Source of the DNA: Tubulanus polymorphus
Lineage: Eukaryota > Animalia > Nemertea
DNA length: 64,000 nucleotides
Reading direction: 5' to 3'
Assembly: GCF_964204645.1 (NCBI RefSeq)
Contig: NC_134035.1
Coordinates: forward strand, 13,362,451-13,426,450
In this document: positions 5,550-63,679 of the stretch, in pieces
How the letters are laid out: each line of letters starts with the position of its first letter
Position numbering within the stretch: position 1 is the first letter of the stretch
The notes under the pieces: generated by a model
What the model saw: the letters and a program-made list of their open reading frames with translations, nothing else
The model's database searches: none
Told to the model about the DNA's origin: nothing
Program-made: the position numbers and the translations under genes

Positions 5550-8500
5550 CTAATCATCTGAATCAGATGAATCATCCTCATCACTCTCCTCGTCATCATC
5601 ACTACTAGAGGAATCGGATGATTGTTGTCGATGATTCCACATATTACGGTATGTGTATATTTTATTACTTGATTCTCGTCCGCCGATACTCGGTAACGCA
5701 AACGATGATTTCGATTGTCTCGCCGGTCCCGATCGTTGCCTCGACGATGCGCTGTACGTATGATACTGTCTCGCCGGGCGAGGTGGAGCTACTCCCGGTT
5801 TACTATTCGTTAAACCGGGTTTATTACTTAGTCCTGGTTTATTGTTATTGTTTTGAGCGGAGGTTGGTTTACCGTCTGTTGAAGAGGTATCCGTTGTATT
5901 ATTGTCAGAAGAAGCCGATATTTGATGTTTCTGCGCTGCGTACATCTATAAAATAATGGAACAGAAAAAAACTCTTAGAGAAAAACATATTCAGGAACTC
6001 CAGGAGGAGCTGAGTGCCCCAGACGTGCCCCAGGAGGAGCTGGTCGACAAGCAACTTGTTGCCCCAGGAAAAGCTTGCTGCCACCGCAGGAACAGGTTGC
6101 CACATGAGGAGCTGGTTGACCCAGGAGCCCCAGGAGCTGGTTGACCCAGGTGGTGAGGAGGAGCTGGTTGACCCAGGAGCCCCAGGAGGAGCTGGCTGAC
6201 CCAGGAGCCCCGGGAGTAGCTGGTTGACCCAGGAGCCCCGGGAGGAGCTGGTTGACCCAGGAGCCCCGGGAGGAGCTGGTTGACCCAGGAGCCCCGGGAG
6301 GAGCTGGTTGACCCAGGAGCCCCGGGAGGAGCTGGTTGACCCAGGTGGTGAGGAGGAGCTGGTTGACCCAGGCGGTGAGGAGGAGCTGGTTGACCCAGGA
6401 GCCCCGGGAGGAGCTGGTTGACCCAGGTGGTGAGGAGGAGCTGGTTGACCCAAGCGGTGAGGAGGAGCTGGTTGACCCAGGTGGTGAGGAGGAGCTGGTT
6501 GACCCAGGAGGAGCTGGTTGACCCAGGAGCCGCGGGAGGAGCTGGTTGACCCAGGAGCCCAGGGAGGAGCTGGTTGACCCAGGAGCCCCGGGAGGAGCTG
6601 GTTGACCCAGGAGCCCAAGGGAAAACTGATTGTCACAGGACACAATAGAAGCGATAAGCAATAAGAGCAAATACAAATAATTGAATAGATTATAACTATA
6701 ACTAACCGTATCTAATTGTGAGTTTGTTTGTTCAGTTAAAGTGTTTAATGTTTGTCTCCAGCTGAGTAAACGAATCAATTCATTGATACTGTTTACTAAA
6801 TCACCCTCGTGTACGAGATCATTAAAACGCTTTCTCCGTCTGAACGGACCGACCGCTTTCATATTGAGTAATACACGTGGAACGTGATATCGAGTGGAAT
6901 CGACGATTCCCGCAAACGGTTCCACCTACAAAATACAAACACAGCAAAATATTCATCATCAATTTCACAGTTTGCATAACTTAATCCGAGACATTGAAAG
7001 TAAACTATAAACGATATTTTATATCGTGAAGAGTTATGGCGAATATCTAAAGTGGTGGTTCAGGCCGGACTGCAGATTGTCTGAAGGTGTCTGAAGGTCA
7101 GGGGTTACAGGCTTAACTTTAACAATGAATTCCGATAATGAACAGACCTCTAGCGAAGTGCCGAGTACGAGTAAAAGATCTGCCTGCGGAAAATCGCGTA
7201 GATAATAATAAAATCTCTTTGGTAAATCTTCACCAAAAAACACAATGTCGGGTTTAATGACTCCCTGGAATAAAACAAAATAAATAACAATTAGAAGCTT
7301 TTCAAATTCCACCTAATAACGCACTAGATGAAGAGAAATATATGTCAGTAAATAAAGTAAAGAGCAAGTACGCCATTTTGAGGCGACCATAAATATGATA
7401 ATATACTTACTGAGCATGATGTTCTCTTTCTGCAATAAGGAATTTTTCCCTGAAAAATGTCGCCCTAAAATAACAGCAAAAATATCAGATCTATTGAAAA
7501 ATACCAAGTTGTTTTAATGATACTACATTCTGTAGCACTATCTACAGAATACCATGCTCAAGTCGGATCTGTTGGGATCTTGAAAATTTGTCCAACTTAA
7601 CAGTCATATCTGAGTTAGATAGTACAGTAGAGATCTTTTGACTTGATAGTGATATCTGAGTTAGATAGTACAGAAGAGATCTTTTGACTCCAGAGTGATA
7701 TCTGACTAGAACCTTGATGATACAATAGACTCTGCATGAGTAAGTAGGATTTTTGATATAAGGTTAATATATCTGAGGACGGTAAACTGTAGTTTGCCGT
7801 GTTATAAATCGTACCTTGATCTCATCTCCGGGATATTGTTTATTACACGCGGTACACGTAGCCGTCGCGAACGTACCGTGGGCTTCGACCATCTTCGCCG
7901 GCGGTATTCCACATACTGAAACAACCAATCATCATCATCATCACCATTACCACGACGACAAAAATACGAAGACAACAATATACGTACGACGTTCTAATCC
8001 GTCGATGTTTTGAGTGTACATCCTCAGTAATAACCCTCGATCGTAAAGCATTCGCACGAAGTAATGGATAATATTCGGACGGTATTTACCGGACGGATAT
8101 AGTTCTTTCGCCAACTCGAAAAACGGGCGCGGTTTATAGTGGAAATAATCGATATCGAATATCGCTTCCGGGTACGGGATACTATACTGTTTGAGATTAT
8201 CGTAAAGACCGGTTCCAGGACTCCTGAAATATCAACATTTTGAAATACATATTTGATTGTACATTCTATTGAAGTGACAGAGATTAGAGAGAGAGGGTAT
8301 TGATCTACAACTCGGAACCCCCTTCTGCCCCAGAACGACACTATGCAGTCTTTCATTTGAAGATGACTTATTGTACAAGTCAAAACATTGAATAATTTTA
8401 GACTTTATTCTTCAAGGGTGCAGGGATTTTATGTTATCTTTATAATATGGACTCAGAATGTTTCAGCAATGTTAGCTTCAAGTGAATTAGAATACAGAAG

Positions 8501-10450
8501 GACCAGTAGCTGTATTCCTGAAGCTGACTATTAGGTTTTAGTCAACTTTTCAGACTCCTTTCTCTCCCTATTTTTGTGTGATTCTAGTTCACATTGCTGG
8601 GCCCGGTTCCACAGTTGTGTGTTAACAGTTAACTCAAAGTTAAAATCAGTAAATTTTCAATGTTTTAACTGAGAACTGTGGAACTGGATCCTGTTGTTAG
8701 ATGAATGAGTTTACGTAGGTACCTGAAATCAGGAATTCCACTGGGTGTACTGATTCCAGCTCCAGCCATTACAACAATATTCTTCACTCGTTCTGTAGAG
8801 ATTAAACGTACGACGTCGTCTAAACTCTGAATACGACTTCCAGCACTAGATATACTCCTCTTTACACCAGCACTGAAATAATCAATACACATATATCAAT
8901 TCAGAAGGGCTCAGTGGCAGAGTCGTGACTTAAATTTAAGACCAGTAAATGCCCATATTTCAACTATATCCAATCTACAAGACTTAAAGACCAGTCTTAG
9001 CTCATTTTGGTTCTATAGCCAATCTAACAACTTAAGACCAGTCTAAGCTCATTTTGATTCTGTAACCAATCTAACAACTTCTTAAGACCAGTCTAAGCTC
9101 ATTTTGGTTCTATAGCCAATCTAACAACTACAACTTAAGAAGACAGTCTAAGCTCATATTGATTCTGTAACCAATCTAACAGACTTAAGACCAGTCTTAG
9201 CTCATTTTGGTTCTATAGCCAATCTAACAACTACAACTTAAGAAGACAGTCTAAGCTCATTTTGATTCTGTAACCAATCTAACAGACTTAAGACCAGTCT
9301 TAGCTCATTTTGGTTCTATAGCCAATCTAACAACTACAACTTAAGAAGACAGTCTAAGCTCATTTTGATTCTGTAACCAATCTAACAGACTTAAGACCAG
9401 TCTAGTGATTTTACATCATTCATGGATAAAACCTACAATATGGATAAAACAATTTACCCAAAGACAAACAAGGGCAATAAATCACTTTCATTTGAGAACA
9501 AATGCAAAAACAGTCGAGGGTAGGCCGAGGGATACCAGCCCTAGAAAATCATTTCTCAAGGTTCAGACTTTGCTATTTTATGGGTTAATGCTGGCATGTT
9601 TTATCAAATTGTAACTCTGTAGTTTTGAGATCCAACATGATCCACATCTTTCGCCGCTACTGTCAAAAAACTTCCGTGCGAATTTTACCAAATTGTAAAT
9701 TTATGAAAATACGTTTCTAGAGAAATCTAAATTAGAAACCTTTTAGTGAAAGCGTTTGTGCTGGCGGTACTGATGTTCGATTTCGCCGATCCATTCGCTC
9801 TGCGTCGTTCCCGTAGCGACAATTGTTGTACACCGTTTGTTAAAGATGAATCGGAGCGTGATTTATTCGGTTGAGGAATCGGTGATTCGACGGTGATCAG
9901 AGTGCGAGCCTGCGGTCGATTCGGTTTGTTATTCGTGGATTTAGATCGCGGTGGAAGTCCAGCAACGAGTCCTGAAAATGTAATCTACACTTCAGCTTCA
10001 CCCGTAAGATAATCTCGACCCAGTTTCGATAGAACTCATTATTGAATTGAAACATTCAGGAAAGAATCAAACTCTTAAGTGGGTAGATACAGCATTTGAT
10101 ATTTGTGTTGCTGTTTGGGTTGGAGGAGGGGGCATGAGGGGGTGGGGTGATTACAGTTTTAATGACCTCTGCACCAGTCACACTTGGTATTTAGTGCACC
10201 ACTGTACTTCTAGGTAACTAACTTGGGTCAGGGTAAATAAAGTTTAGATTATTCACACTGGGCTCACTGATTTTCAGAACTCATTCAAATCACCCCCCCC
10301 CCCCCCCCCCGTACTGCAACGACCGAGGAGGGGGCCAGAAGAGGAGGGCGCGGTGGGTGATCGATGATGTCGATATTGAAGAACATGTTGATCTGAATTG
10401 ATTGATTGATGATAGTTCGTACCTGTTTTTAGTTTCGCTGCTGCTGACAT
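5550..10450 (-). CDS. SIRT3: NAD-dependent deacylase, SIRT3-like class I sirtuin (~510 aa, 9 coding exons)
   Basis: Exons 10423-10450, 9740-9971, 8723-8872, 7988-8223, 7815-7915, 7411-7464, 7148-7264, 6707-6925, 5550-5945; GT-AG introns with matching phases. Motifs [41 protein letters not shown]...[26 protein letters not shown]. Sequence and intron positions resemble SIRT3 more than SIRT2; exact paralog uncertain. Confidence 0.9.
5990..6620. repeat. GC-rich ~28-bp minisatellite in the last SIRT3 intron
   Basis: (CCAGGAGCCCCGGGAGGAGCTGGTTGAC)n with variants. Confidence 0.9.
8980..9404. repeat. ~47-bp tandem repeat related to the interior of MITE family B
   Basis: (TTAAGACCAGTCTAAGCTCATTTTGGTTCTATAGCCAATCTAACAAC)n; also ~27720-27960 and ~60535-60820. 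Confidence 0.9.
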
Positions 10451-10863: not shown

Positions 10864-13800
10864 ATGGCTCCTGTCGAGGTTGTGGTAAGTTGTCTTACTT
10901 ATTCTGTATTTTATGTATTTCATTTACAGTAACTGACAATATCTTAAATCATAGTAAAACCAACACTCAGTGACTGAGTCTACATTTTTGGCTTTGCGGA
11001 AAGGAAAGGTCCCTCACCTGGCTGGTCACGACCCCTCACTGACCATCATGACTGGTTTGCACTGAACTGTCTCGTGACCCTTTATTTAAGAGCCTGTGTT
11101 CTGTCTATTAAAATGGAGTTTGTCGACACATGAAAGCTGTCATTGTCTGGGTCTTATGAAGAAGTGTCCGACCGTCTTTACTCTTTGCCTTTGGTGGCGT
11201 CAACGGTCTAGGGCTCCTGTCCAAGCCAAGCTGTCCTCTTGTTGGCCTGTCATTAGTTATATGTCCTTCTCTCTCTCCAAGTATCATTGATTACACACAG
11301 TCTGACAGGAACAGGTGTGTTTGGATGATGCTAAACAGGTCTGTTGTACTCTACAGACGAGCTGGGCTGGGCCTGGGTCTCTGCATAGGCCGCATTAATT
11401 AGTCCTGTAAAACTTGGCCCTGACAGGACCAGTTGTTCCTTAGCATCAGGAAACCTATTTAACATTCAGGATATCTATTTAACCAGGACAGTTTTTATAG
11501 CCTATATATATTTATATGATATTGAGTTGATTTCAATCAGGCCCTACTCGTGATTTAATGGTTTTAACTCGCAACTGTTGAACTGTAGGTCCTCGGTCTG
11601 ACTATTTGTCATATGAAAACATGTGATAATGTGTAATCAATCTAGTTTATAAATCTATACTCAGTATAACAGTCGCGGTACCCCGGTGTGTGAGAGACCA
11701 ACACTAGGTTCTAGTCAATATTAAATCTTCAAGTATTCTGCACGTATAACCCAGATTTCTATAGTAAGGGGGACATGACCTGAGTGCGACTAATCAAATC
11801 ATATATGATATCGTGTTAAGTATGGTACTTATAAATGCAGAAATATTTAACTTGAAAAGTTCTGAGTCTCGCTGGCTGATTATTGAAGAGCGCTCTACTT
11901 TCTATCCTCCTCAAGGAGACAATTAAGACATTCTTGTTTTGACGTTTTCTGTGCTGATCGAGACCTGAACGGTTTATGTCTAAACGTTTTAATGAATTCT
12001 AAGTCGAATTAGGACAAAATTGAAGATCTTTTTACTACAGGATAATTGTTTAGAATTAGTGCAGTAGAACATTTTCGTACTAGGTACTTGAAAAATATAA
12101 TTAGATGTCATAATGACTTTATTCTGGAGTTAGAAGATAGGGTAGTACTTTTCCCATTGAGGGGAAGGTTTACTGAGGGTCCTATCTTAGGAATTATTAT
12201 CAATTGTGTTGCGTTATGAGGTTCTCTCGGGCTTTGTTGATTTGTAGAAGAGCTCTGGACCTGATTCCACAGTGTTCTGAATTAAGATTGCACTCAAGAG
12301 TTTACTTATTGAAAGTGAACTGTGGAACTGGATCCAGAACAGTAGAACTGATTCAAAGCAGTGGTACTGGATCCAGAACTGTGAAACTGGATTCAGAACT
12401 GTAAAACTGGATTCAGAACTGTGGAACTGATTCCAGAACTGTGGAACTGGATCCTGAACTGTGGAACTGAATCTAGAACTGTGGAACTGGATCCAGAACT
12501 GTGGAACTGGATCCAGAACTGTGGAACTGGATCCAGAACTGTGAAACTGGATTCAGAACTGTAAAACTGGATTCAGAACTGTGGAACTGAATCCAGAACT
12601 GTGGAACTGGATCCTGAACTGTGGAACTGAATCTAGAACTGTGGAACTGGATCCAGAACTGTGGAACTGGATCCAGAACTGTGGAACTGGATCCAGAACT
12701 GTGGAACTGGACTCTTTTAAGCGTAAAGTTAAATGCATCCTTGTATAACATGCAAATATGGTTATTGATTGAACCCAAATTTCATCATGCGAAAACCGTG
12801 TTATTCAGATTGAAGAGAAACAAGATTTGAATAATTCATAAAGAAATTCAAATAATATAAAAACTAGTTACGGATAAAAATCGATAATATAGTAATAATT
12901 TCTGGTCGCGTATTTTATCCTATCACATTCAAACACACATTCAGCATTTATCACTGACATCTGTTCAACAGTCATTCTCCAGACAGAGGTTCAACACGGG
13001 ATGATTCAATATTCTTCATTTCACCAGTGTTGAGAAAATATACCGATTTCATTTGTGTCGATGAACAGGAAAGGTTCGGATCTAGACGGATTTTGAAAAG
13101 TTTCCTTGAAAATTTCTCGAGAGTTGGCCCAGACCCTTGGCACTTGCCTATTCAACTACTGGGTCTCGGGGTCTTGTCACGTAAATTTGGAGGATGGAAG
13201 TCAAAGATTCATGACTGAACTTAGATTCCGGTATTTGAGGCTTTGTTAGTAGAATAGTTTTGATTATGATTGAGAAGATATTGTTCGTATAGACTCAATA
13301 CACACTCACAGCTGTCTAATAGAATAGGGAGCCTCGATCCTCCCTCACTCAGTGGTTGAAACAGCTTTGCGTGTGACTAATACTAACACACTAGCAGCAG
13401 ACGGCAGTACGACTGATAGGACCGCAGACAGTGAGACAGGATACACACACGTACAAATCATGTCTACTTTAGGTATAATTGTAAGTAATCTCAATATCGC
13501 GCTTTAAATCGGAAAGCAAAATGTCTGATTTTGAACGCGAGATTTCAGAAATTTGATATCGAACATTTCGTAGTAATGTCAACATTTGAAATTTGAGCTG
13601 ATTTGATATCTCATTGATTAGATTAACTTCATTTCAATTTTAGCCTATTTGTAAATTTGTTGTCATAAAGAGATTGTTTTGAAATTTTATATCATAAAGA
13701 ATCTACGTAGTGAGAGAGACTTCATGTAAGATGTGCTTAAATTCAGTAGTGCCGGAAATTAGGGGCTGATTCAGGGGGTAGAGACTTTGACAGTAGAACT

Positions 13801-16800
13801 AAGAAGTGAATTGGACATATTATACTGGAATAGAGCAAGTAAGGTATCCTCGCAGTCAAAACAAGGGTCAGAACAATTTTGAAATTTTAATGCATTTTTG
13901 TGCGATTTCTAGGCACTTCAGGTGCATCACAGTGATCTGCTGTCTTTAGTTACGGGTGGAAAAAGTGCCTTGAAAAATATTGCCTTTGCATTTTCAAGAC
14001 ACGCGATAATTGCGACATTGTCTGGATCCACCATAAGCAGCCTTTTTGACACCAGTGCCCGGTTGTACAATATGACTCAAATATAAGACCAGCCTAAAAC
14101 CATCCTTTAGTTCTATATCTAACAACTCGTGACTATTCTTGAGACCAAGTCTGTGTAACTGGAGCATAGTTCAGAAATAAAAAAGATTCCCGTGACAATA
14201 TTCGAGCAAAATGAACAGATTGTATTTCAGTAACATTAGATATATATATGTAACATTGATAAAACCGATGCATTTGTTTCATAGAACGACAAAAATTGTA
14301 TATAATATGATAATTTCTATATTATTGTATAGAAGCAGCTGTTCACGTTCGGTTCCGTGCCTGGATATATGAACTGATCTAGATTATTAATATTCAATAT
14401 CGTACATATCTTACACGTACATACACACTACTCATCAGGTTTATCAATCAGTCTGATCGTTTTGGTCTCGTGGTTCCGGACAGAGGTTTCTTGCACTTCC
14501 CTGATTAACTACTGCTGTCTGTGTATTTCCTCTGATATTCCCTTACAATCTATAGAGATCTCTGTTTGTCTTCTTCGTCAAGATTCCAATAATTTCATCT
14601 ATGAATTGTCTGCTTAAATGTGTTTCAATTGAATATTTTCTGTAACTGAAATTTACATCAGTTTTTCCTGATCTCCCTTTGTCCTCACTCTCCCTCCCTT
14701 TGCCCCTCTCTCCCTCTGCCCTCTCTCTCCTTTTGCCCCCTTCCCCTCTCTCCCTCTTCCCTCTCCCTCTCCCCTCCCTCACCCTCCCTCTCCCTCTCTC
14801 TCCCTTTGTCCTCCCTCTCCCTCCCTTTGCCCCTCTCTCCCTCTCCCCTCTCTCTCTCCCTCTCCCTCTCTCTCCCTCTCCCCTCCCTCTCCCTCTTCCT
14901 TCCCCTTTTCTCTGCACATTTCATATGTAATGATACATGTTTTATATTGTTTGTGTCTTACAGAAACTTGCTACATGTGTAAGTATCCTTCTCATAGTAA
15001 CTCACCACCACCACGTCGTCTCTGCTCAAACCGATGATCCGGATCACGATGCCGCTGTTACCGTCGACGCTGCTGATGACGCAGCCGCCGTAGATACTGA
15101 CACCGCACCCCCTCAAACACCGCCACCTGGTGACGATAAACAAAAACAACCTAAAAAGAACACTATTGTCATAGCGATAGTGGTAATATATCACTTAGTA
15201 ACACTTCAACAATCGGACAGATTGCGGCGGATAGTGGCTCCCTCTATTCTATTATCTCCGAGCATGATTGGTCGGTTTCAGAGGTTGTTACTATGGCGAC
15301 AGCTGCTTCTTTTGCTTTATCTACAACTCTCTTCTTGTTTTCACTATATTTTCTTGTTTTGCTGTGATAGATTTTTGACCGTTAAATTCTTTGAAACTAC
15401 GGCACATTCTACCGCCGACTGTGGCTCCCTCTATATTTAACCCTTTTCAGTTTTCGAACCCCCCGCTGTTAAACGGTGTTCGCTATACACACCTCGGTGT
15501 CATCATTTGCTTGTGGTATTCTGTGTGCGTCGTTTATTAATTAGTTTAATTATGCTAACGAGTTTTTGATCGACATGTTTAGTCTAATAATAGATATCTG
15601 TATATGTGTTGATGTATACAGTAGGTTTGTATGAATAATTATCCCTTAGATACTACAATAAATAATGATCTCCATTTTATTAATATATCTACATATTATA
15701 TCTATATACATACTAGTATACTACAGTATCGCAGACAACATATGAAATATAAATATCGCTGTAAAATTGAATAGTTTATCGATGCTGTCATGTTTTGATT
15801 GTTCCTATCATCACGAGCTGAAACGATGCAGTTGTTAGAAACTTGCTTCAAGTCATTGACAGACGTAACGACAACTAAAACTGCAATTTAAGGCTTAATT
15901 AGTAATACCTCGTTTCTCCTAATCGGCCGGGTCACTTTTGTAAATCGCGATAAAATGTGTAATCAGTTTATTTCTATAACTGCCGGGTCTGTTATTGTTA
16001 GTTTGATCATGATTTTAAAAGAAGTGATGTACAGGGTAGATAGGCGGCCGGCCGGGTCAACTTTTAAGCTAAAATTTTACCAAAAACCTGGAAAACCTTT
16101 GGATAATGTTATTGACCGCGTGTTTCATCATCAGTACATGATTGACTGAAAAATGAATGAATTGGAACATTTAAAACCTAGAAATTTCTCTGATTCATTC
16201 GCAGGGAATTTTGTATCGTAACATGGAAAAACCCGGGAAATTTCAGAGGAATTTGTAAATGGATGTAAAGTGGCGCCATCCTGTATGAGATGATGATGTT
16301 ATTGTTGTATATTTACAGGCTGTAGCCGGTGTAGTCGGTGTAGGGTTAGTCATAATCGCCGCTATAGTTATAAAGAAACTATCAAAGAAGAAAAGTGCAC
16401 CGGTCGCGCTGGTTGACCCGAACGTGAAATATCCTCTACGTCTGGTCGACCGTGAGGAGATCAGTCACGATACGAGACGTTTCCGTTTCGCTCTTCCATC
16501 ACCGCAGCATATACTGGGATTACCAGTCGGTGAGTACTACATGACTCCAGCAGTCAATAGTCCCAGTGACTCCATCACCGCAGCATATACTGGGATTACC
16601 AGTCGGTGAGTACAACATGACTCCAGCAGTCCCTAGTCCCAGTGACTCCATCACCGCAGCATATACTGGGATTACCAGTCGGTGAGTACAACATGACTCC
16701 AGCAGTCAATAGTCCCAGTGACTCCAGCAGTCACTAGTCTCAGTGACTCCAGCAGTAACTGGTCTCAGTGACTCCAGCAGTAACTAGTCCCAGTGACTCC

Positions 16801-19800
16801 AGCAGTCACTAGTCTCAGTGACTCCAGCAGTAACTGGTGTGAGTGCAACCTGTATTAAGTGACTCCAGCAGTAACTGGTCTCTACATCTATAGACGATAA
16901 GTCCTTATCATATTCTGAAACTTGCCCTGAAGTCGTTGTAGTTGTGACAATTATTGTGTCTAGGATTTATCCAAATAAAGACTTAACGCTTAGTAAATTG
17001 AATTGGAAATAGAAATTGAGACTCAAAAATAGAGAAGACTTATCTAAATGGCAATTTACACTTAGTAGATTGAATTGTAATTACAAATCAGGACTCAAAA
17101 TAGGAGATGACTTCAGTAATGTGATGACTGACTCGAGTTTGTTTAACTGTAGTTTGTGATATGATTGTATTTTCTCATTCTATAGGTCAACATATCTACC
17201 TGAGCGCCAGAATCGATGGACAGCTCGTCATTCGACCTTATACACCTGTTTCTAGTGATGACGATAAAGGATTCTTTGATCTGGTTATTAAGGTTCGTCT
17301 TAGATCTTAGATTAGAGAGAGGGAGTCGTTTTAGATCTTAGATCCTAAATTAGAGAGAAAGAGAGAGAACTCTCAGAATCAACTCTAAATGTACCGGTGA
17401 GACTGTGAACCCGGGCATACTGGCCACATCATTCACTGGTCTCTCATCAATCACTGATTCAATCGGTTTTGAATCCTGGTGGTGACTGAGTATCTCAAGT
17501 GTTTTGTCTCTGGCCTGGCTATGATAACTGAATTGGTACTCGGTGGGATGGGGGTGGTAAAATAAAAACCTTGAACCTCCTTATTTTCTAAAAATTTTCG
17601 TACGCAATTTTATTAACCGTTTTGAATTATGATAATTGTACGTTAGGGGTAATTCATTTATTACGTACGCATTAGGGGAGGGGGGAGGGGTCAGTGCAAT
17701 TGCGTTCTGTAATGCTTAATGTATATGAAAAAATGGCCGATTTTGCGTACAGAGGGGGTTGAAAAATTCAAATTTTATGCGTACGTAATAAATGAATGAT
17801 CCTTTAGCGAGATACATATACAAAAATTCAAATTTTAATCCTGTTTAAAGAGAGTCAGCGTAAGGTGTTCTCCGAATCTGTATTGTAGGTCTACTTCAAG
17901 AATGTGCATCCTAAATTCCCGGAGGGCGGAAAAATGTCGCAACATTTGAACGATATGGAGATTAACGATTACATCGATGTTCGCGGTCCGTCTGGTCTCC
18001 TCGTTTACACCGCTCCAGGTAAAAACATATTAAACTATTCTCTAAATCATCGGAATTCTCTCTCAAAATGTAGAGAGAATCCTACAAGAATAACGAAAAA
18101 CCAGCCCAAAAATTTAACTGAAGCTAGTAGTTTATTCAATGTTTTGACTCAGGAATAATGAATAATGATGACTATCAGGATATAGTCGAGACGTTGAATA
18201 AGCTACTAGCTTCAGTTACATTTTTGGGCTGGTTTTTCGTTATTCTTGTAGGATTCTCTCTACATCGCTTCAACACGGATCCATAGTGTTTTATCAATCA
18301 TGATCTCTCTCAAAATATTTTCATCTATATTTTACATTATGAATATTGAAATATGTTCATCTCTGAGCACGTATAATCATCACGACGTTTTAAACTTAGA
18401 CGTGATTCAATGATAAATTAATAAATTGTTACGTTTCAAACCTAGAGATTTCTCTGATTCACTTTTTGTGTAATCACATGGAAACCTGAGGGAAAACTGA
18501 GGGGACTGATTTGTAAATGAGTGGAAAGTAGCGCCACCCTGATAAATATCTATGGATCTTCAATGAAACTGTATTTTAATCTAACTGTTTAAAATCTAAT
18601 GTTACATTTGTTTATCAGGTGAACTGGCGATTCGTGAAGATAAGAAAAGTGAACCGGTTCAACGTAAAGTGAACAAGATTTCACTAATTGCCGGCGGGAC
18701 TGGAATAACACCGATGCTACAGATTATCAGACAAGTTTTTAAAGATCCAGAAGACACGACGGAACTTGCTCTACTGTTCGCTAACCAGGTATATTAATAC
18801 TGACTCTATCCTTTACAGCCTCCTTTACGACTGCAGTTATACATGGGATTTCAGTTCAAATAGTTCATATCCTTAACTCCTTAGTCGAAAAATAGTTAAA
18901 ACTTTCAAAAACTGAGCATTCACTCTATTCATCACATGTGTTCAGTACTTCACATTTTTGAATGAAAATGAACTACAAACACCAGAAATTAGATATTTCA
19001 TCAGCACACTTTCAAAAACTAACCGTCCACACTTCACATGGTGTTCAGTGCTTCACCTGAGACATTTTTAATTGAAAATCAACTACAAACACCAAACATT
19101 AGACATTTCATACAAACTTCACTGTAATAATGAATGCTTGTCTGAAAGGGGTGTAGAATACATGGAGGCAGGTTTGTGAAGGGGTCGATCTCGGACTGCA
19201 GTTTAATACCTGTCTCTATAATTGATATGTTTTAGACTGAACAGGATATTCTGTTGAGAGAGGAATTGGAAGAAATAGCGAGTAGCCATCGTAAACGCTT
19301 TAAACTGTGGTACACCGTCGATCGCGCTCCGGAAGGTGAGTATTTAAAACACGTGCTGTTTGAAAAGTCCGCGCCAGTTGATCAGAATTTGGTTAATTGT
19401 TGGATAAATGCCTTTGTGACCACGTTGTTTATCCACTAGTTTACTCTAAGCCTTTCAGTGCGGTATTTTATTCACTGATAGGCTTTGCTAGTACACAGCA
19501 TCGCGGTGTATTGATGTAAATAGTAATTAGTTGTTATCTCTCCTGAAAGATGGCAGCACGTGTCAAACATAGAGAAATATTAGTAACTATTGATACACCG
19601 CACAGCAGTGTAGACGCACTATAGCGGTATGCCATTTATTCAAGGAGTGGAATTTCTAGAAATTTTCAAATTATCTCCCGCACTTTCTAGTATTGATTAT
19701 CTAGCACTGAAAGGGTTAATAGAGCAGCTGGGCTCCACGTTTATTTAAGAATTCTACTATCACACGAATAAATGTATATATTTCTAGGTTGGGAGTACAG

Positions 19801-19960
19801 CGAAGGATTTATCAGCGCTGATATGATTTCCGCTCATCTATTTCCACCCGGTGATGATTCGATTGTTCTGATGTGCGGACCGCCGCCGATGATTAAATTC
19901 GCTTGTTTACCGAACCTCGATAAACTCGGCTACGCGGAGAACATGAGATTCGCTTTCTAA
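10864..19960 (+). CDS. CYB5R3: NADH-cytochrome b5 reductase (CYB5R3-like), ~303 aa membrane-anchored isoform
   Basis: Exons 10864-10884 (MAPVEVV, gtaagt donor; alternative first exon 13460-13480), 16319-16529, 17186-17292, 17889-18018, 18619-18788, 19236-19335, 19788-19960. Motifs [72 protein letters not shown]. Choice of first exon is less certain than the core. Confidence 0.93.
12318..12712. repeat. 20-bp minisatellite (AGAACTGTGGAACTGGATCC)n
   Basis: Direct tandem copies; same family as the TIR of MITE A. Confidence 0.95.
13460..13480 (+). CDS. CYB5R3: Alternative first coding exon of CYB5R (MSTLGII)
   Basis: aaatcATG TCT ACT TTA GGT ATA ATT|gtaagt; 7 codons, phase 0, compatible with the exons at 14964 and 16319. 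Confidence 0.7.
14679..14912. repeat. Polypyrimidine (CCCTCT-like) tract
   Basis: Low-complexity C/T run; similar tract at ~45400-45555. Confidence 0.9.
14964..15182 (+). CDS. CYB5R3: Alternative CYB5R exon (signal-peptide remainder, acidic Pro/Thr-rich segment, start of TM)
   Basis: ttgtgtcttacag acceptor, 73 open codons [25 protein letters not shown]...[13 protein letters not shown]|gtaata donor, phase 0-0; GC-richer than the flanking intron. Confidence 0.7.
16496..16880 (+). repeat. 76-bp tandem copies of a CYB5R exon end plus donor, decaying into a ~24-bp repeat
   Basis: CCATCACCGCAGCATATACTGGGATTACCAGTCG|GTGAGT three times. Confidence 0.9.
17645..17803. mobile_element. MITE with ~25-bp TIRs in a CYB5R intron
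   Basis: AGGGGTAATTCATTTATTACGTACGCA ... TGCGTACGTAATAAATGAATGATCCTT. Confidence 0.65.
18068..18265. repeat. Inverted repeat (~82-bp arms) in a CYB5R intron
   Basis: ATGTAGAGAGAATCCTACAAGAATAACG... pairs with ...CGTTATTCTTGTAGGATTCTCTCTACAT. Confidence 0.85.
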
Positions 19961-19977
19961 ACTTTATACACATACGA

Positions 19978-20500
19978 ACCGTGTTCCACAGTTCTGTACA
20001 CGGTTCCACAGGTTCTGGAACCAGTTCCACAGTTCAGGACTCAGTCCTGCACTTCAGGATCCAGTCCCACAATTCTGGATCTGGTTCCACACTTCAGGAC
20101 CCAGTCCCGCAATTCTGGACCCAGTTCCACACTTCAGGACCCAGTCCTGAAGTTCTGGACCCAGTTCCACATTTCAGGACCCAGTCCTGCAGTTCTGGAC
20201 CCAGTTCCACACTTCAGGACCCAGTCCTGAAGTTCTGGACCCAGTTCCACATTTCAGGACCCAGTCCTGCAGTTCTGGACCCAGTTCCACACTTCAGGAC
20301 CCAGTCCTGAAGTTCTCGACCCAGTTCCACATTTCAGGACCCAGTCTTGCAGTTCTGGACCCAGTTCCACACTTCAGGACCCAGTCCTGAAGTTCTGGAC
20401 CCAGTTCCACACTTCAGGACCCAGTCCTGAAGTTCTGGACCCAGTTCCACATTTCAGGACCCAGTCCCGCAATTCTGGATCTGGTTCCACACTTCTTGGA
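19978..20500. repeat. 20/40-bp minisatellite in the CYB5R 3' UTR
   Basis: (GGACCCAGTTCCACACTTCA GGACCCAGTCCTGAAGTTCT)n. Confidence 0.9.
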
Positions 20501-21691
20501 CACGCTAAAATTTGACTCAAAAATTAGAATTAGTAAATTTCCAAATATTCTAAAACTTGCGTAAAATTATCACGGAAAGAACTGTGAACAACAAACCATG
20601 GAGAATAAATTTTGATATTGGATTTGTTTGAATATAGGAAAGATTTATGAATTATTGATTTGATGTGATTTGTTTATGAAATGCTATGTTTGTTTTTTTG
20701 GAAGCGGGAATTCTGTGAGTTTATATCATTGTCGATATAATCAGCTTGAAAGAACAATATTTTTGGAAAAATGAATTTTTTTTGTGTCTAAATTCAACAA
20801 AAAAAGAAGAATCTGAACAAAGATGAGGTGGTTATTTGCGGTTGTTTTATTGAACGAACTTTAAAACGCTTTTGTAAATAAATCTATATATTCTGTATAT
20901 GGATAGATGGTGAACTGTTAATCTTTAGTTATAACTGTAAAAACTATCTACATACATATAAAACTTACATTTGTAACCAGTTAGATTTGGATCTAATCCG
21001 GATTTTGATCAAGTTCATGTTGATCTAGATTCCAAGTGTTTAAATGAATCTGGAAACTAATTCTGATATGGATTTCGTGAAAACCAAAACCTGGTTCACG
21101 AGCTGTGTTGATCAAACGTTGGTTAAAGATAACATGCGGATGATTACTGTGGACTTTTAATGGTCACTGTGTCAACTATCCACTGTGTAACTCTTACCAA
21201 CTTTAACCAACGACAGCTGTCCCTTAGAATTTGGCTTTGAGTAAAATTCTTGAGGTTTCACTAGTTGTGAAACTCTCACTCGTGATAAATTTTATCAGAT
21301 CCGAATGGTCCAAATCAGTCGACCCCCTTCTATAGTGTATTCAAATAGTATTCATTTGTGTGATACATATATCAACAACCAGTGTGTGGACCAGCGGTTC
21401 CACCAGTGTGGATGGATCCTGTTCCACAGTTATGAGTTTATATACAATGTAACTCACAACTGTGGAACTGGGTCTTGTAGTATTTATACTTATAATTAAC
21501 TATGCAGTGATATCGTTAAATGTGCTATAAGTATTTGTAATAATGTTGAGGTGATTGTGTCGTAGGATGAGGAAATTCTTCATTTGACTTTTTTGTAGAA
21601 ATAAATCGTCAAACTCGTTTCGATGTTTGGATAATATAGAAATAATTATAGGCATCTGATAGTGCTTTATTGAAACTTGTATTTTTCAATG

Positions 21692-21697
21692 AATAAA
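21692..21697 (+). terminator. CYB5R poly(A) signal (proximal copy)
   Basis: AATAAA followed by a GT-rich tract (ttgttgtttgtttt) at the end of an AT-rich 3' UTR-like region. Confidence 0.5.
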
Positions 21698-23031
21698 AGC
21701 TTCTGCTTTGCGAAATTCAAGCTCAATTTGTTGTTTGTTTTCACCTCGGGGCTCCGTGGATACCTACAGACCTAAATATGAGGATGTCTTTAATTACTAG
21801 GTTCGAAAACCGAAACGCCCCTGTACATCCTCTATTCAGCATCAGGACCATTCTGAATCAGTAGCAGTAATTACTGGGTTCGAACCCGGGATAATTGCTC
21901 AGATTAATAATGATAATGCTATGATCGCCATCTATTGGATTATGGCAGAACCGACTAGATAGCTCTTATTTGTCTCACTGAGTCTTCTTCAGTGGGTTGA
22001 AATCACACTCGCCATCTGGTGGATTTCTATGCTACAACAGTCTAATGATGGTTCTATCCATCAGATGGCGAGTGTGATTTTCACGGATTAAAGAAGACTC
22101 AGTGAGACCAGTGAGAGCTGTCTAGTCAGTTCAGCCAAATTCCAATAGATGGCGATCACGATAGAAAGCTTGATATCCTCTTCTTGTTGGGCATCGGCCT
22201 GTACACCTTCTATTCAGCATCAGTACCACTCTGAATCAGTATCAGTAATTACTCGGTTCGAACCCGGGACACCCCTGTACATCCTCTACTCAGCATCAGT
22301 ACCACTCTGAATCAGCATCAGTAATTACTGGGTTCGAGCCCGGGACACCCCTGAACATCCTCTATTCAGCATCAAGATCCCTGAATTATTGTAAATAATT
22401 ACTGGGTTCGAGCCCGGGACACCCCTGTACATCCTATTCAGCATCAGGACCACTCTGAATCATTGTCACTAATTACTGGATTCGAGCCCGGGACACCCAT
22501 GTGCAACCTCTATCAGCATCAGGACCACTCAGAATCAGCATCTGTAATCATTGGGCTCGAACCCGGGACACCCGCTTAGTTTGATAATGATGTTCTGATT
22601 GCCATCTATTGGATTTTGGCAGAACCGACTAGATAGCTCTTATTTGTCTCACTGAGTCTTCTTCAGTGGGTTGAAATCACACTCGCCATCTGGTGGATTT
22701 CAACGCTACTACAGTTTAATGATGGTTATATCCACCAGATGGCGAGTGTGATTTTAACGGATTAAAGAAGACTCAGTGAGACCAGTGAGAGCTATCTAGT
22801 CAGTTCAGCCAAATTCCAATAGATGGCGATCACGATAGAAATCTTGATATCCTCTCCTTGTTGGGCATCGGCCAGTACATCCTCTAAACAGCATCAATCA
22901 GGACCATTCTGAATCATTGTAAATAATTACTGGGTTCGAGCCCGGGAAACCCCTGTACATCCTCTATTCAACATCAGGATAAATCTGAATCATTGTAAAT
23001 AATTACTGGGTTCGAGCCCTGGACACCCCTG

Positions 23032-23900
23032 TATAGTGTATTCAAATAGTATTCATTTGTGTGATACATATATCAACGACCAGTGTGTGGACCAGCGGTT
23101 CCACCAGTGTGGATGGATCCTGTTCCACAGTTATGAGTTTATATACAATGTAACTCACAACTGTGGAACTGGGTCCTGTAGTATTTATACTTATAATTAA
23201 CTATGCAGTGATATCGTTAAATGTGCTATAAGTATTTGTAATAATGTTGAGGTGATTGTGTCGTAGGATGAGGAAATTCTTCATTTGACTTTTTTGTAGA
23301 AATAAATCGTCAAACTCGTTTCGATGTTTGGATAATATAGAAATAATTATAGGCATCTGATAGTGCTGTATTGAAACTTGTATTTTTCAATGAATAAAAG
23401 CTTCTGCTTTGCGAAATTCAAGCTCAATTTGTTGTTTGTTTTCACCTCGGGGCTCCGTGGATACCTACAGACCTAAATATGAGGATGTCTTTAATTACTA
23501 GGTTCGAAAACCGAAACGCCCCTGTACATCCTCTATTCAGCATCAGGACCATTCTGAATCAGTAGCAGTAATTACTGGGTTCGAACCCGGGATAATTGCT
23601 CAGTTTAATAATGATAATGCTATGATCGCCATCTATTGGATTATGGCAGAACCGACTAGATAGCTCTTATTTGTCTCACTGACTCTTCTTTAATGCTTTG
23701 AAATCACACTCGCCATCTGGTGGATTTCTATGCTACTACAGTCTAATGATGGTTTTATCCACCAGATGGCGAGTGTGATTTTAACGGATGAAAGGAATGT
23801 CAGTGAGACCAGTGAGAGCTATCTAGTCAGTTCAGCCAAATTCCAATAGATGGCGATCACGATAGAAATCTTGATATCCTCTCCTTGTTGGGCATCGGCC
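23032..23900 (+). repeat. Direct duplication of 21331-~22200 (CYB5R 3' end plus first palindrome)
   Basis: Near-identical sequence starting TATAGTGTATTCAAATAGTATTCATTTG at 21331 and 23032. Confidence 0.95.
23393..23398 (+). terminator. Duplicated CYB5R poly(A) signal (distal copy)
   Basis: Same context as 21692, within the 1701-bp-offset duplication. Confidence 0.45.
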
Positions 23901-26900
23901 TGTACATCCTCTAAACAGCATCTGGACCACTCTGAATCATTGTGAATAATCACTGGGTTCGAGCCCTGGACACCCCTGTACATCCTCTATTCAGCATCAG
24001 GATAAATCTGAATCAGCATCAGTAATTACTGGGTTCGAACCCGATAGACCTCTGAACATCCTCGACTCAGCATCAGGATAACTGAATCATTGCAAATAAT
24101 TACTAGGTTCGAGCCCGGGACACCCCTGTACATCCTATTCAGCATCAGGACCACTCTGAATCATTGTCACTAATTACTGGATTCGAGCCCGGGACACCCG
24201 CTTAGTTTGATAATGATACTATGATCGCCATCTATTGGATTTTGGCAGAACCGACTAGATAGCTCTTATTTGTCTCACTGAGTCTTCTTCAGTGGGTTGA
24301 AATCACACTCGCCATCTGGTGGATTTCTATGCTACTACAGTTTAATGATGGTTATATCCACCAGATGGCGAGTGTGATTTTAACGGATTAAAGAAGACTC
24401 AGTGAGACCAGTGAGAGCTATCTAGTCAGTTCAGCCAAATTCCAATAGATGGCGATCACGATAGAAAGCTTGATATCCTCTCCTTGTTGGGCATCGGCCT
24501 GTACACCTATTCAGCATCAGTACCACTCTGAATCAGTATCAGTAATTACTCGGTTCGAACCCGGGACACCCCTGTACATCCTCTACTCAGCATCAGTACC
24601 ACTCTGAATCAGCATCAGTAATTACTGGGTTCGAGCCCGGGTCACCCCTGAACATCCTCTATTCAGCATCAAGATCCCTGAATTATTGTAAATAATTACT
24701 GGGTTCGAGCCCGGGACACCCCTGTACATCCTATTCAGCATCAGGACCACTCTGAATCATTGTCACTAATTACTGGGTTCGAGCCCGGGACACCCATGTG
24801 CAACCTCTATCAACATCAGGACCACTCAGAATCAGCATCTGTAATTATTGGGCTCGAACCCGGGACACCCGCTAAGTTTGCTAATGATGTTCTGATTGCC
24901 ATCTATTGGATTTTGGCAGAACCGACTAGATAGCTCTTATTTGTCTCACTGAATCTTCTTCAGTGGGTTGAAATCACACTCGCCATCTGGTGGATTTCTA
25001 TGCTACTACAGTTTAATGATGGTTATATCCACCAGATGGCGAGTGTGATTTTCACGGATTAAAGAAGACTCAGTGAGACCAGTGAGAGCTATCTTGTCAG
25101 TTCAGCCAAATTCCAATAGATGGCGATCACGATAGAAATCTTGACATCCTCTCCTTGTTGGGCATCGGCCTGTACATCCTCTAAACAGCATCAGGACCAC
25201 TCTGAATCATTGTGAATAATTACTGGGTTCGAGCCCTGGACGCCCCTGTACATCCTCTATTCAGCATCAGGATAAATCTGAATCAGTGTCAGTAATTACT
25301 GGGTTCGAACCCGATAGACCTCTGAACATCCTCGACTCAGCATCAGGATAACTGAATCATTGCAAATAATTACTGGGTTCGAGCCCGGGACACCCCTGTA
25401 CATCCTATTCAGCATCAGGACCACTCTGAATCAGTATCAGTAATTATTGGGCTCGAACCCAGGACACCCACTTAGTTTGATAATGATAATGCTATGATCG
25501 CCATCTATTGGATTTTGGCAGAACCGACTAGATAGCTCTTATTTGTCTCACTGAGTCTTCTTCAGTGGGTTGAAATCACACTCGCCATCTGGTGGATTTC
25601 TATGCTACTACAGTTTAATGATGGTTATATCCACCAGATGGCGAGTGTGATTTTCACGGATTAAGAAGACTCAGTGAGACCAGTGAGAGCTATCTTGTCA
25701 GTTCAGCCAAATTCCAATAGATGGCGATCACGATAGAAATCTTGACATCCTCTCCTTGTTGGGCATCGGCCTGTACATCCTCTAAACAGCATGAGGACCA
25801 CTCTGGATCATTGTGAATAATCACTGGGTTCGAGCCCTGGACACCCCTGTACATCCTCTATTCAGCATCAGGATAAATCTGAATCAGTGTCAGTAACTAC
25901 CGGGTTCGAACCCGATAGACCTCTGAACATCCTCGACTCAGCATCAGGATAACTGAATCATTGCAAATAATTACTAGGTTCGAGCCCGGGACACCCCTGT
26001 ACATCCTCTATTCAGCATCAGGATAAATCTGAATCAGTGTCAGTAACTACCGGGTTCGAACCCGATAGACCTCTGAACATCCTCGACTCAGCATCAGGAT
26101 AACTGAATCATTGCAAATAATTACTGGGTTCGAGCCCGGGACACCCCTGTACATCCTATTCAGCATCAGGACCACTCTGAATCATTGTCACTAATTACTG
26201 GATTCGAGCCCGGGACACCCGCTTAGTTTGATAATTATAATGCTATGATCGCCATCTATTGGATTTTGGCAGAACCGACTAGATAGCTCTTATTTGTCTC
26301 ACTGAGTCTTCTTCAGTGGGTTGAAATCACACTCGCCATCTGGTGGATTTCTATGCTACTACAGTTTAATGATGGTTATATCCACCAGATGGCGAGTGTG
26401 ATTTTCACGGATTAAAGAAGACTCAGTGAGACCAGTGAGAGCTATCTTGTCAGTTCAGCCAAATTCCAATAGATGGCGATCACGATAGAAATCTTGACAT
26501 CCTCTCCTTGTTGGGCATCGGCCTGTACATCCTCTAAACAGCATGAGGACCACTCTGAATCATTGTGAATAATCACTGGGTTCGAGCCCTGGACACCCCT
26601 GTACATCCTCTATTCAGCATCAGGATAAATCTGAATCAGCATCAGTAATTACTGAGTTCAAACCCGATAGACCTCTGAACATCCTCGACTCAGCATCAGG
26701 ATAACTGAATCATTGCAAATAATTACTAGGTTCGAGCCCGGGACACCCCTGTACATCCTATTCAGCATCAGGACCACTCTGAATCGTTGTCACTAATTAC
26801 TGGATTCGAGCCCGGGACACCCGCTTAGTTTGCTAATGATGTTCTGATTGCCATCTATTGGATTTTGGCAGAACCGACTAGATAGCTCTTATTTGTCTCA

Positions 26901-29900
26901 CTGAGTCTTCTTCAGTGGGTTGAAATCACACTCGCCATCTGGTGGATTTCTACGCTACTACAGTTTAATGATGGTTATATCCACCAGATGGCGAGTGTGA
27001 TTTTCACGGATTAAAGAAGACTCAGTGAGACCAGTGAGAGCTATCTAGTCAGTTCAGCCAAATTCCAATAGATGGCGATCACGTCAGAAATCTTGATATC
27101 CTCTCCTTGTTGGGCATCGGCCTGTATACTTCGTTTCAGCATCAGGACCACTCTGAATCATCCTGAATAATTACCGAGTTCAAACCCGGGACACCCCTGT
27201 ACATCCTCTAAACAGCATCAGGACCAATCTGATTCAGTATCAGTTATGCTAACTATATACAAGAGAATAGTTGTGTCCTCGGTCGAATTTCCTCAAAACA
27301 GTAAATAAACAACTATTATAATGTTAATGCCGATATGAGTAATAATTGTATTGATCCAAGTGTATTAATTATAATCATAATATGCGGCGTGTACACATCT
27401 ATACAACCTGTATTATCATATATATTATATATATATATATATACTTCCTCAAAGCTTGCATAAAAAACACTAAAATCAATCATCAATCATATATATAATA
27501 AATACGCAATGGAGTTAGATTCATCTATATATCTATCATTCACGAATATATTACACTTGACTAAAGCTAAAAATTCTACAACGTCTTGTATTTGATGCAG
27601 TATTAAACCTTGAAAGAACTCGACTGCATTTCAACAGTCATTCACTGTAGCCGTTGTCTGTCTCATAACTTACTCCGTAAACATCCGTATACCAAGTTTA
27701 ACGGTCTAGACTTGAGAGATGAAAGACCGGTCTTAGCTCATTTTGGTTCTATAACCAATCTAACAACTTCTTAAGACCAGTCTAAGCTCATTTGGGTTCT
27801 ATAACCAATCTAACAACTTCTTAAGACCGGTCTAAGCTCATTTTGGTTCTATAATCAATCTACCGTAACAACTTCTTAAGACCAGTGTAAGCTCATTTTG
27901 GTTCTATAACCAATCTAACATTTCAAGATCAGCTCAACAACTTACAGCTAAAGACCAGTCTTAGAACGCTGCATGTATCTGAACTCTGAATGCAAAGCAA
28001 AAACAAAATTAAAGTCTAAAGAGTTTAAATGCAAGGTTTACAACTGCATAGAAAGAATTCAAACTTCTCCAATTTTAAAGGCAGAATATGATATCCCTGA
28101 AACTTTACATCGGTTTCGTTGTGTTCTAAGTTAGAGACTGACTCGGGGGCTGTGTGAATTCTAATTGCACATTATTTGTAAAGAGAGAGTTAAAGAGATT
28201 GCGTGTGTGTCATGCTAAGATAAAATCCCTGATATATATCATGATCAATCCCCCTAAAATACAGCAGCTTTCAATATATATATATATATATATATTACAT
28301 CTATATACATGCAGCTCACATTTCATCTCAGGTTTTGTTACAACTTTGCATTTACCCTTATTATGCACAACAATATATATAGCTCTTCTGTAAAATAACG
28401 ATGATGCCATATTACTGCAGATGTCAAACACAATAAATTATTTACACAACAGATGACCAGTAGTTTTGGAATCCCGATTACGGAGGAATCTTGATACTTC
28501 AAGAGACCAGAAAATCTGTTCGTTATAACTGATACAGCGGAACCTCGTTACAACGAACTTCAGGAGACCAGAAAATCTGTTCGTTAACAGCTTGAGATGA
28601 AAAATTCTTCACTTTTTACATCCTAGTTCGAGCTCAGGTGACCAAAACATTGAGCTTAATCATGTGCTAACTATCAAAATCTACTGAATTCTTATTGGTT
28701 TTGAATGACACAATGTATTTTGAGAGTCCAATAGACAAACATCACGCGAACAGACACTTCTTAATGATTTAAATCGTCACGATCCTAAGTATTACATCAT
28801 AATAAACCATTGCCTCATAAATATTACTACTTTATATTCATATCATCATCGTTCATAGCTGCTGTAAGAATTTAAACACGTTCACCGCTGACCGCAAGTT
28901 ATCTCATAGTTCCAGTTCGGCCATCATTGTCACTATGAGTTATTTCATAGCTGTTTCTTTTTCATTTTCACCGAATAGATATTTGCACTCTGGTGCACGG
29001 GAATGACACAGTTCCTGATCGGCTGGCAATGCGAACAAACTCAGCTTCATTCTCAAGGCTCATCGGTCAATTTTGAATAATGGCTGACCACATAATAGTT
29101 CCAGCTCTAACTATGAGATAACTGATTGTAACGACACAGTAGCAATGAACATCAGTAAACACCAAATAATCATTAAAAATACAAAACATTATCAGATTAT
29201 ACAGATTTCACATATTTTTTCAGTTTAAAGCATTTTAAAAAGGCACAAAGAATTCTTGTTCAAGCACGACGTGTTGTATATCTTCAGTTGTTATTTCGCA
29301 GTAAATCAAATTTACAAACGATTAAATAATTAATTACCCTTTTGAAATAAATACAGATCCGAGTAAAAATGTAAACGAATTTCCGCGCTACCCCCGTTAC
29401 TAGTTAGTTCAGAGCTCTCTAACTAGGGGACACGTTGTTTAATTTTAAATGCATTCCGAGATGAATATATGACGGACAAAAAATGTCATGAAAATATATC
29501 GTATCACAACAGAATATCAACAGAAAAAAAGTGACTATAGTTCGAATAGTTGAATTCGATCTGGGGATGAATCTAGGGGATCTAGGGGATCCCTGCGTCT
29601 GTCAAAGCAGAGATGATAAAGATCTGTACTGATTTGACACTGATCCGCTCGTTAATATTCCTTCGGAGAGGACGGATCTCGCTTGTTGCCTTCAGCATGG
29701 CTGATTTATTTAAAGAAAGCCTTTTCTTTTTTGTTTTGGACCTCGGCTTTCCAATTTGTCTAGATCCGCCGATGACGAAAAGATTGTTTAATCAAGTTTA
29801 AAATAAGTTTCATCAAACTGTAATCTTTCTTATAAATCAGAATCAGAAGTTCTTGCTTAAAAATTTTGACCATAATTTTGAGTATGAAAACATCGGAAAT

Positions 29901-29937
29901 GAACTAATTTTCAACTGTAGAGGCAAACACCAGAACG

Positions 29938-30360
29938 GGTTCCTGAGCTGTGGAACTGGGTCCAGAACTGTGGAACTGTGTCCAGCACTGTGGAATTGTG
30001 TCCAGAACTGTGGAACTGGGTCCAGAACTGTGGAACTGGGTCCAGCACTGTGGAATTGTGTCCAGAACTGTGGAACTGGGTCCAGAACTGTGGAACTGGG
30101 TCCAGAACTGTGGAACTGGCTTCTGAACTGTGGAACTGGATCCAGAACTGTGGAACTGAGTCCAGAACTGTGGAACCAGGTCCAGAGCTGTGGAACTGTG
30201 TCCAGAACTGTGGAACTAGGTCCAGAGCTGTGGAACTGGGTCCAGAACTGTGGAACTGGGTCCAGCACTGTGGAATTGTGTCCAGAACTGTGGAACTGTG
30301 TCCAGAACTGTGGAACCAGGTCCAGAGCTGTGGAACTGGGTTCAGAACTGTGGAACTGTG
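29938..30360. repeat. 20-bp minisatellite, MITE A TIR family
   Basis: (AGAACTGTGGAACTGGGTCC)n; further arrays at ~35595-35856, 45185-45280, 46678-46915, 50346-50770, 57313-57450, 62272-62712. Confidence 0.95.

Positions 30361-31049: not shown

Positions 31050-63679
<32,630 letters not shown>

Follow-up and report, generated by a model that had tools for sequence, protein, structure and literature searches.

The window analysed here is a 64,000-nucleotide stretch of the genome of the nemertean Tubulanus polymorphus (C11:13.36-13.43 Mb; genome of 268 Mb in 77 contigs), and it contains a composite array in which eight palindromes lie within a 76-bp minisatellite. We found that both units, the palindrome and the 76-bp unit, are genome-wide repeats. 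On balance, we favour the explanation that the array is a drifting local expansion of a composite repeat found on the distal parts of the chromosomes, that its foldback carries real two-part CTCF sites, and that the B-box-like words of the 76-bp units are passengers. In this case, the locus would be a predicted CTCF-dense patch produced by copy-number drift, and any insulation would be a by-product. In our opinion, the grammar of the motifs is the more valuable result, the array itself being ordinary repeat dynamics.

Anatomy of the array and its CTCF-type sites

A preliminary description of this DNA had claimed eight palindromes of 237 bp, and all eight were located (Table 1), with 103-nt arms around a 31-nt loop. 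The arms are 85-89% complementary, and the mutual identity of the eight palindromes is 93-99%. Folded as DNA, the hairpin is very stable (-92 kcal/mol, z = -21.8). Each palindrome includes four CTCF-like motifs, two leftward and two rightward, and the two CTCF-type sites of each arm are 84 bp apart. The earlier count of about 32 divergent motifs agrees with our search, in which the relaxed pattern CCANYAGRKGGCR had 32 matches in the array against 0.08 expected and none in the rest of the window. However, the strict CTCF consensus that had been claimed for them stands only in part. The pattern CCASYAGRKGGCR is fitted only by 15 intact inner sites, whereas the 16 outer sites read CCAATAG. Furthermore, the outer sites are two-part, with AGTTC-N9-core at the eight right sites and GGTTC-N9-core at the eight left sites.

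The 76-bp units were counted by their B-box-like anchors. There are 35 of these, and 27 of the 35 match GGTTCRANNCC on either strand. This is the number previously given for a unit of about 75 bp, and six of the seven spacers between palindromes contain four to six units, as had been stated for most of them. A single event also copied the unique block in front of the array into spacer 2. The array is real, since run X1 covers the duplicated block at a depth of 65-78, about twice the 33 of the flank present in one copy, and one short-read contig of this run crosses the duplication junction without differences. In addition, a second sample yielded reads over locus-specific parts, and these are compatible with the same structure. 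None of the listed contigs spans the whole array, as would be expected of an assembly artefact. Nevertheless, an artefact is scarcely credible, because the X1 contigs match without differences and the 1-7% differences between the copies are nested.

The genome has a CTCF gene (L052, C3:3.43 Mb) with 11 C2H2 fingers over three exons, and human CTCF is the best PDB match of its product (E = 9e-62). Like the cytochrome b5 reductase (CYB5R) and RhoGAP genes on both sides of the array, it is spliced, and all three genes were searched one exon at a time. Genome-wide, the strict core has 3,915 occurrences vs 35 for the reversed control (about 110-fold enriched), and the CCAATAG core occurs 679 times vs 11. 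The density of strict sites is about one per 68 kb genome-wide, and the array packs 32 motifs into 5.4 kb.

High-affinity insulating CTCF sites of vertebrates are marked by an upstream motif of 10 bp (CTGCAGTTCC type), which is found about 8 nt before CCA (PMC12885311). When 5-14 nt were allowed between AGTTC and the strict core, the spacing was nearly always 9-10 among the first 100 matches. Much of the signal at spacing 9 came from one other repeat family. With that family and this palindrome set aside, about 12 of 14 contexts were at 9 or 10 in a hand count, against a uniform expectation of about 3. Moreover, six diverged contexts keep only the core, a spacer of 8-9 nt and GAACT, and their flanks differ. 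One related family, which has no palindrome, holds two sites at a distance of 87 bp (84 here), and its intervening DNA has no more similarity than shuffled sequence. TGYAG before the core peaked only modestly, at spacings 11-12. We also considered CTGTAGTAGC, 8 nt before the core, as the upstream motif of the left inner site. The geometry fits, but the candidate was rejected because it is only as conserved as the rest of the loop; likewise, the TGTAG-like word of the loop is not more conserved than its surroundings.

Sites of the two-part type were also seen in other repeats. A dispersed mid-chromosome family on C1-C5, unrelated to this palindrome, has a near-perfect one (AGTTCC, 8 nt, CCACTAGGGGGCG), often as two to four sites about 440 bp apart. 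Minisatellites of 78 bp and 54 bp (C6:107756-109281, C4:11006841-11007165) include one two-part CTCF-type site per unit, and the upstream motif of the C6 unit is nearly vertebrate-like (TGTAGTTCTC). At loci L049 and L050 (C10:11.72 and 12.08 Mb), there is a tandem repeat whose 1.43-kb unit includes a degenerate 76-bp unit and several two-part sites that are not palindromic, and it is a distant relative of the palindrome arm.

Conservation within the palindrome was compared among 43 copies, chosen by whole-palindrome similarity, at the symmetric arm columns. The outer cores have 0.27 changes per column vs 0.94 in the remaining symmetric columns of the arms (p about 0.004), which makes them about 3.5-fold more conserved. 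The upstream GAAC has 0.00 changes per column against the same 0.94 (p about 0.006). The inner cores are weakly conserved (p 0.03-0.09), with 0.54 changes per column at p about 0.09. Taken together, the CTCF gene, the core enrichment, the vertebrate-like spacing of the upstream motif and the conservation of the outer sites suggest that the motifs are probably real CTCF binding sites and that the outer ones are two-part. The CTCF reading of the preliminary description is thus retained, as one of predicted sites.

The B-box-like words gave a different result. Among 251 distinct 76-bp units, conservation is 0.915 in the box vs 0.918 at the remaining positions, and GTTCRANNC is kept in only 55% of the units. 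The expectation that motif positions diverge more slowly than the rest of the repeat was therefore right for the outer CTCF cores and wrong for the B-box. Furthermore, by hand comparison about 18 of the 26 76-bp clusters on C1-C3 have no nearby outer site. The preliminary description had proposed one module that packs both classes of site and had read the boxes as sites for TFIIIC. We abandon both proposals, because the 76-bp unit occurs mostly without the palindrome, its minisatellite also houses a foldback free of CTCF motifs, and the box is no better conserved than its unit. The B-box-like words, judged by this comparison, are probably passengers. As had been noted before, A box and cloverleaf are lacking: the array has no match to an A box, no tRNA by ARAGORN and no Rfam tRNA match at E < 10. 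The fold of the 76-bp unit has a z between -0.4 and +0.6. With no support from ARAGORN, Rfam or folding, a tRNA or tRNA-derived short interspersed element (SINE) was rejected as the identity of the unit, which keeps only a by-eye likeness to a T-arm. In the same window, related 52-bp minisatellites with a B-box-like word are found at 37690-38388 and 43127-43515, and such words are common in the minisatellites of this genome.

A repeat family near the chromosome ends

The outer 17-mer has 295 matches in the genome, and the 76-bp core has 2,142. The family includes roughly 150 palindromes and more than 2,100 76-bp units, mostly near chromosome ends. For instance, a hand count of the first 100 exact matches of the 76-bp core placed about 94 of them in the terminal 3 Mb of a chromosome. 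Dozens of loci have the same cassette, with 1 to more than 14 palindromes per locus, and they offer a natural series for the dose-response of binding and insulation.

The inner junctions, where a unit meets a palindrome, are fixed. In contrast, the outer ends of the arrays are found at all phases of the unit. In addition, no target-site duplication was seen at the outer array ends of the compared loci. Because of these three features, we infer one ancestral fusion followed by copying of the recombination type. In the window, the array starts and ends at roughly one phase of the 76-bp unit, without a target-site duplication. A fixed terminus or a Helitron-like nick phase was considered for these in-phase ends and rejected, because other loci scatter. 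Within the palindromes, arm-to-arm conversion is pervasive, and at asymmetric columns 142 of the 166 variants have the letter of the opposite arm. Older copies have only one 76-bp unit each, and the flank that they share is longer than 1.4 kb.

Other loci also show internal deletions (L034, L038 and L039), inverted loops and an insertion like a long interspersed element (LINE). This LINE-like insertion (L033:1700-2770) is 5′-truncated, has a (TATTCG)n tail and is located inside a palindrome arm; after it, the flanking arrays form a large inverted repeat. A second foldback of 176 bp, free of CTCF sites and with the ends CCGTACGG, is present at a fixed phase in the 76-bp minisatellite, where it replaces the B-box (Table 1). 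At L011, L017 and L018, the left linker between unit and palindrome has a retroposon-like 3′ tail on the opposite strand (AATAAA and TATCT repeats), and this tail is limited to one subfamily. Meanwhile, an old multi-copy block of 70-90% identity lies upstream of ancestral palindrome copies (L035:100-1480; many chromosome ends).

Origin of the array and rival explanations

We propose that the palindrome may have arisen by an old fold-back, as an inverted duplication of a 103-bp segment with two CTCF-type sites 84 bp apart; it sits at a fixed phase inside the 76-bp minisatellite. The arms would have been homogenised by arm-to-arm conversion, and the array would have grown locally by slippage or unequal exchange, in a recent tandem expansion. 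New loci would have been reached by random-ended pieces, probably through ectopic recombination or template switching and not through cut-and-paste.

Several results weigh against this explanation. First, the signal of the inner cores is weak, and it is gone after conversion-type changes are removed. Second, the conserved outer sites are at the palindrome ends, where transposase sites would be conserved as well, and many of the outer sites taken as independent may share descent. Third, the blocks of the older copies exceed the 1.4-kb flanks that were retrieved, and thus a larger mobile element is possible. Fourth, the array begins about 165 bp past the probable poly(A) site of CYB5R, where a barrier could matter. 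This site was placed by a contig of run X2 (depth 1551), which terminates at 21627, just over 20 nt past AATAAA. The kind of run X2 is not on record, and it is probably RNA; the placement of the poly(A) site is probable if this is so.

The fourth point leads to a functional boundary or read-through barrier, in which CTCF, with or without TFIIIC on the B-boxes, would separate CYB5R from the RhoGAP gene at their 3′ ends, and copy number would be selected. The Pfam results agree with the earlier statement that the array is between two convergent genes, with CYB5R on the + strand and the MyTH4-RhoGAP gene on the - strand. A position just beyond the probable poly(A) site, a motif density far above one strict site per 68 kb, and reads of the second sample that are compatible with a shared array would all suit a boundary. 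In addition, two-part sites insulate in vertebrate assays, and one screen needs two to four tandem sites (PMC12885311). However, the B-box is unconstrained, most of the 76-bp clusters compared on C1-C3 lack a nearby outer site, and the array is young and similar to many others of the family. The divergent orientation of the motifs had been taken as a mark of a boundary, but it is a by-product of the palindrome geometry, and in echinoderms and flies the orientation of the motifs is no sign of a boundary (PMC13317027). Furthermore, multimerising D4Z4 abolishes its CTCF binding and anti-silencing (PMC2639723). Thus, we consider a selected boundary at this locus unlikely.

Inverted repeats of the Sleeping Beauty type have an inner/outer direct-repeat design. 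The palindrome could be a non-autonomous foldback DNA transposon of such a design, and its four transposase sites would then be CTCF-like by chance or by co-option. Each arm has two related sites, one outer and one inner, and conservation is highest at the outer sites. Internal-deletion derivatives exist at the three loci named above, and an 8-bp GGACACCC-like word is found on both sides of the insert. However, the same linkers are found beside nearly all copies, so these are not independent insertions with their own target duplications, and the true ends of the insert are not inverted repeats. The related family with two sites 87 bp apart has no palindrome, and the two-part motif is also present at single, unrelated sites. 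No transposase open reading frame turned up, although none was searched for systematically. For these reasons, a transposon of this kind seems improbable to us. Two more specific identities were rejected. In a miniature inverted-repeat transposable element, the arms should be terminal inverted repeats, but here they are internal to constant non-complementary linkers; moreover, no target-site duplication was seen, the outer ends are random, and only one ancestral 8-bp direct word is present. A Helentron HINE was rejected because the outer junctions have no common flank among the loci compared, the older blocks of more than 1.4 kb being known by their inner parts only.

The very stable hairpin, which lies about 300 bp downstream of the probable poly(A) site, could also be a hairpin-RNA or endogenous small interfering RNA locus fed by read-through from CYB5R. 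In run X2, the depth over the array bins is at most 33 and many bins are 0, vs 1551 in the contig of the 3′ untranslated region (UTR), although contigs cannot prove absence. Rfam gave only generic hairpin matches, far below gathering scores, and the constraint is on the motifs and not on pairing as such. We regard this origin as very unlikely.

The local expansion of a distal-arm repeat therefore remains our preferred explanation, and a broader claim may be added to it, which taken as a whole is doubtful. It states that CTCF of a non-vertebrate bilaterian reads a high-affinity site of the two-part kind that is considered mainly vertebrate, and that several unrelated repeat families (this foldback, the mid-chromosome family, and the 78-bp and 54-bp satellites) independently captured and amplified such sites, so that copy-number-variable arrays would be tunable boundaries on the distal arms. 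Whether CTCF builds boundaries outside vertebrates is an open question (PMC10658181, PMC13317027). A two-part motif at vertebrate spacing in a non-vertebrate bears on it, and the upstream motif has been reported absent in Drosophila (PMC12885311).

Known systems and the surrounding features

Rodent B2 SINEs have spread CTCF sites as retroelements. Like them, and like the boundaries at extra TFIIIC (ETC) B-boxes, the repeat studied here spreads CTCF motifs beside words of RNA polymerase III type. However, it has no A box, no match to a tRNA model, no SINE tail of its own and no constraint on the B-box. In comparison with the vertebrate two-part CTCF site (core and upstream motif, read by fingers 9-11; PMC12885311), AGTTC is likewise found 9 or 10 nt before CCA..AG.TGGCG, but the outer core is CCAATAG, and of the 10-bp upstream motif only AGTTC remains.

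By analogy, the array appears to combine traits of the bivalve tandem-repeat foldback elements and of CTCF-bearing macrosatellites. The bivalve foldback or MITE-like elements DTC84 (PMC3879986) and Cg_HINE (PMC7492417) also have dispersed short tandem arrays with inverted repeats, ordered unit variants, a palindrome in each unit and a locus-specific copy number. However, they are cassettes with conserved ends around the array (an AA target duplication, or subterminal inverted repeats, a 3′ stem-loop and TT sites), whereas here the array encloses the foldback and has random outer ends. D4Z4 (PMC2639723), DXZ4 (PMC3218863) and human subtelomeres (PMC4032850) also have CTCF sites amplified in tandem (predicted sites here), variable copy number and often a place near chromosome ends. 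In contrast to these, the present units are 0.6-0.75 kb long, have four divergent predicted sites per hairpin and occur at many loci of an invertebrate.

Table 1. Coordinates of the array, its parts and its neighbours (positions in the window unless a locus is named)
Feature	Position	Strand	Remark
CYB5R exons	16289..19957	+	FAD_binding_6, NAD_binding_1; last exon ends at 19957
Original unique block, probable CYB5R 3′ UTR end	21331..21790	+	AATAAA ~21600, inferred poly(A) site ~21627
Whole composite array	21791..27244	.	8 palindromes within 76-bp minisatellite
Palindrome 1	21922..22158	.	Outer and inner CTCF-like sites, left pair -, right pair +
Spacer 1	22198..22573	+	Five 76-bp B-box-like units, type A; 97.7% identical to spacer 4
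Palindrome 2	22596..22832	.	
Two 76-bp units	22872..23031	+	End at duplication junction; CCCCT microhomology
Duplicated 460-bp block in spacer 2	23032..23491	+	Copy of CYB5R 3′ end including AATAAA; 99.3% vs 21331-21790
Palindrome 3	23623..23859	.	Most diverged, 93-94% vs others
Spacer 3	23899..24199	+	Four 76-bp units, type B; 93-97% vs spacers 5, 7
Palindrome 4, reference copy	24222..24458	.	
Palindrome 4 outer cores	24226-24238, 24442-24454		AGTTC or GGTTC 9 nt upstream of each
Palindrome 4 inner cores	24310-24322, 24358-24370		
Spacer 4	24498..24870	+	Five 76-bp units, type A
Palindrome 5	24893..25129	.	
Spacer 5	25169..25469	+	Four 76-bp units, type B
Palindrome 6	25495..25730	.	
Spacer 6	25770..26220	+	Six 76-bp units, type B, with internal dimer duplication
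Palindrome 7	26246..26482	.	
Spacer 7	26522..26822	+	Four 76-bp units, type B
Palindrome 8	26845..27081	.	
3′ exons of MyTH4-RhoGAP (ARHGAP39-like) gene	31050..35166	-	Stop ~31050
20-bp minisatellite arrays	12317-12711, 19983-20495, 29933-30358, 35582-35850, 46684-46915, 50347-50765, 62274-62707		
Second foldback	L033:3174-3349		Also L032, L048, L014, L039

Three further features of the window were noted. Exons of a sirtuin (SIR2 domain) are located at 7037-10000 on the - strand, upstream of and divergent from CYB5R. A 20-bp minisatellite is very abundant, and the probable 3′ UTRs of CYB5R and of the RhoGAP gene contain some of its arrays. In addition, ARAGORN called a tRNA-Ala(TGC) at 62899-62969.

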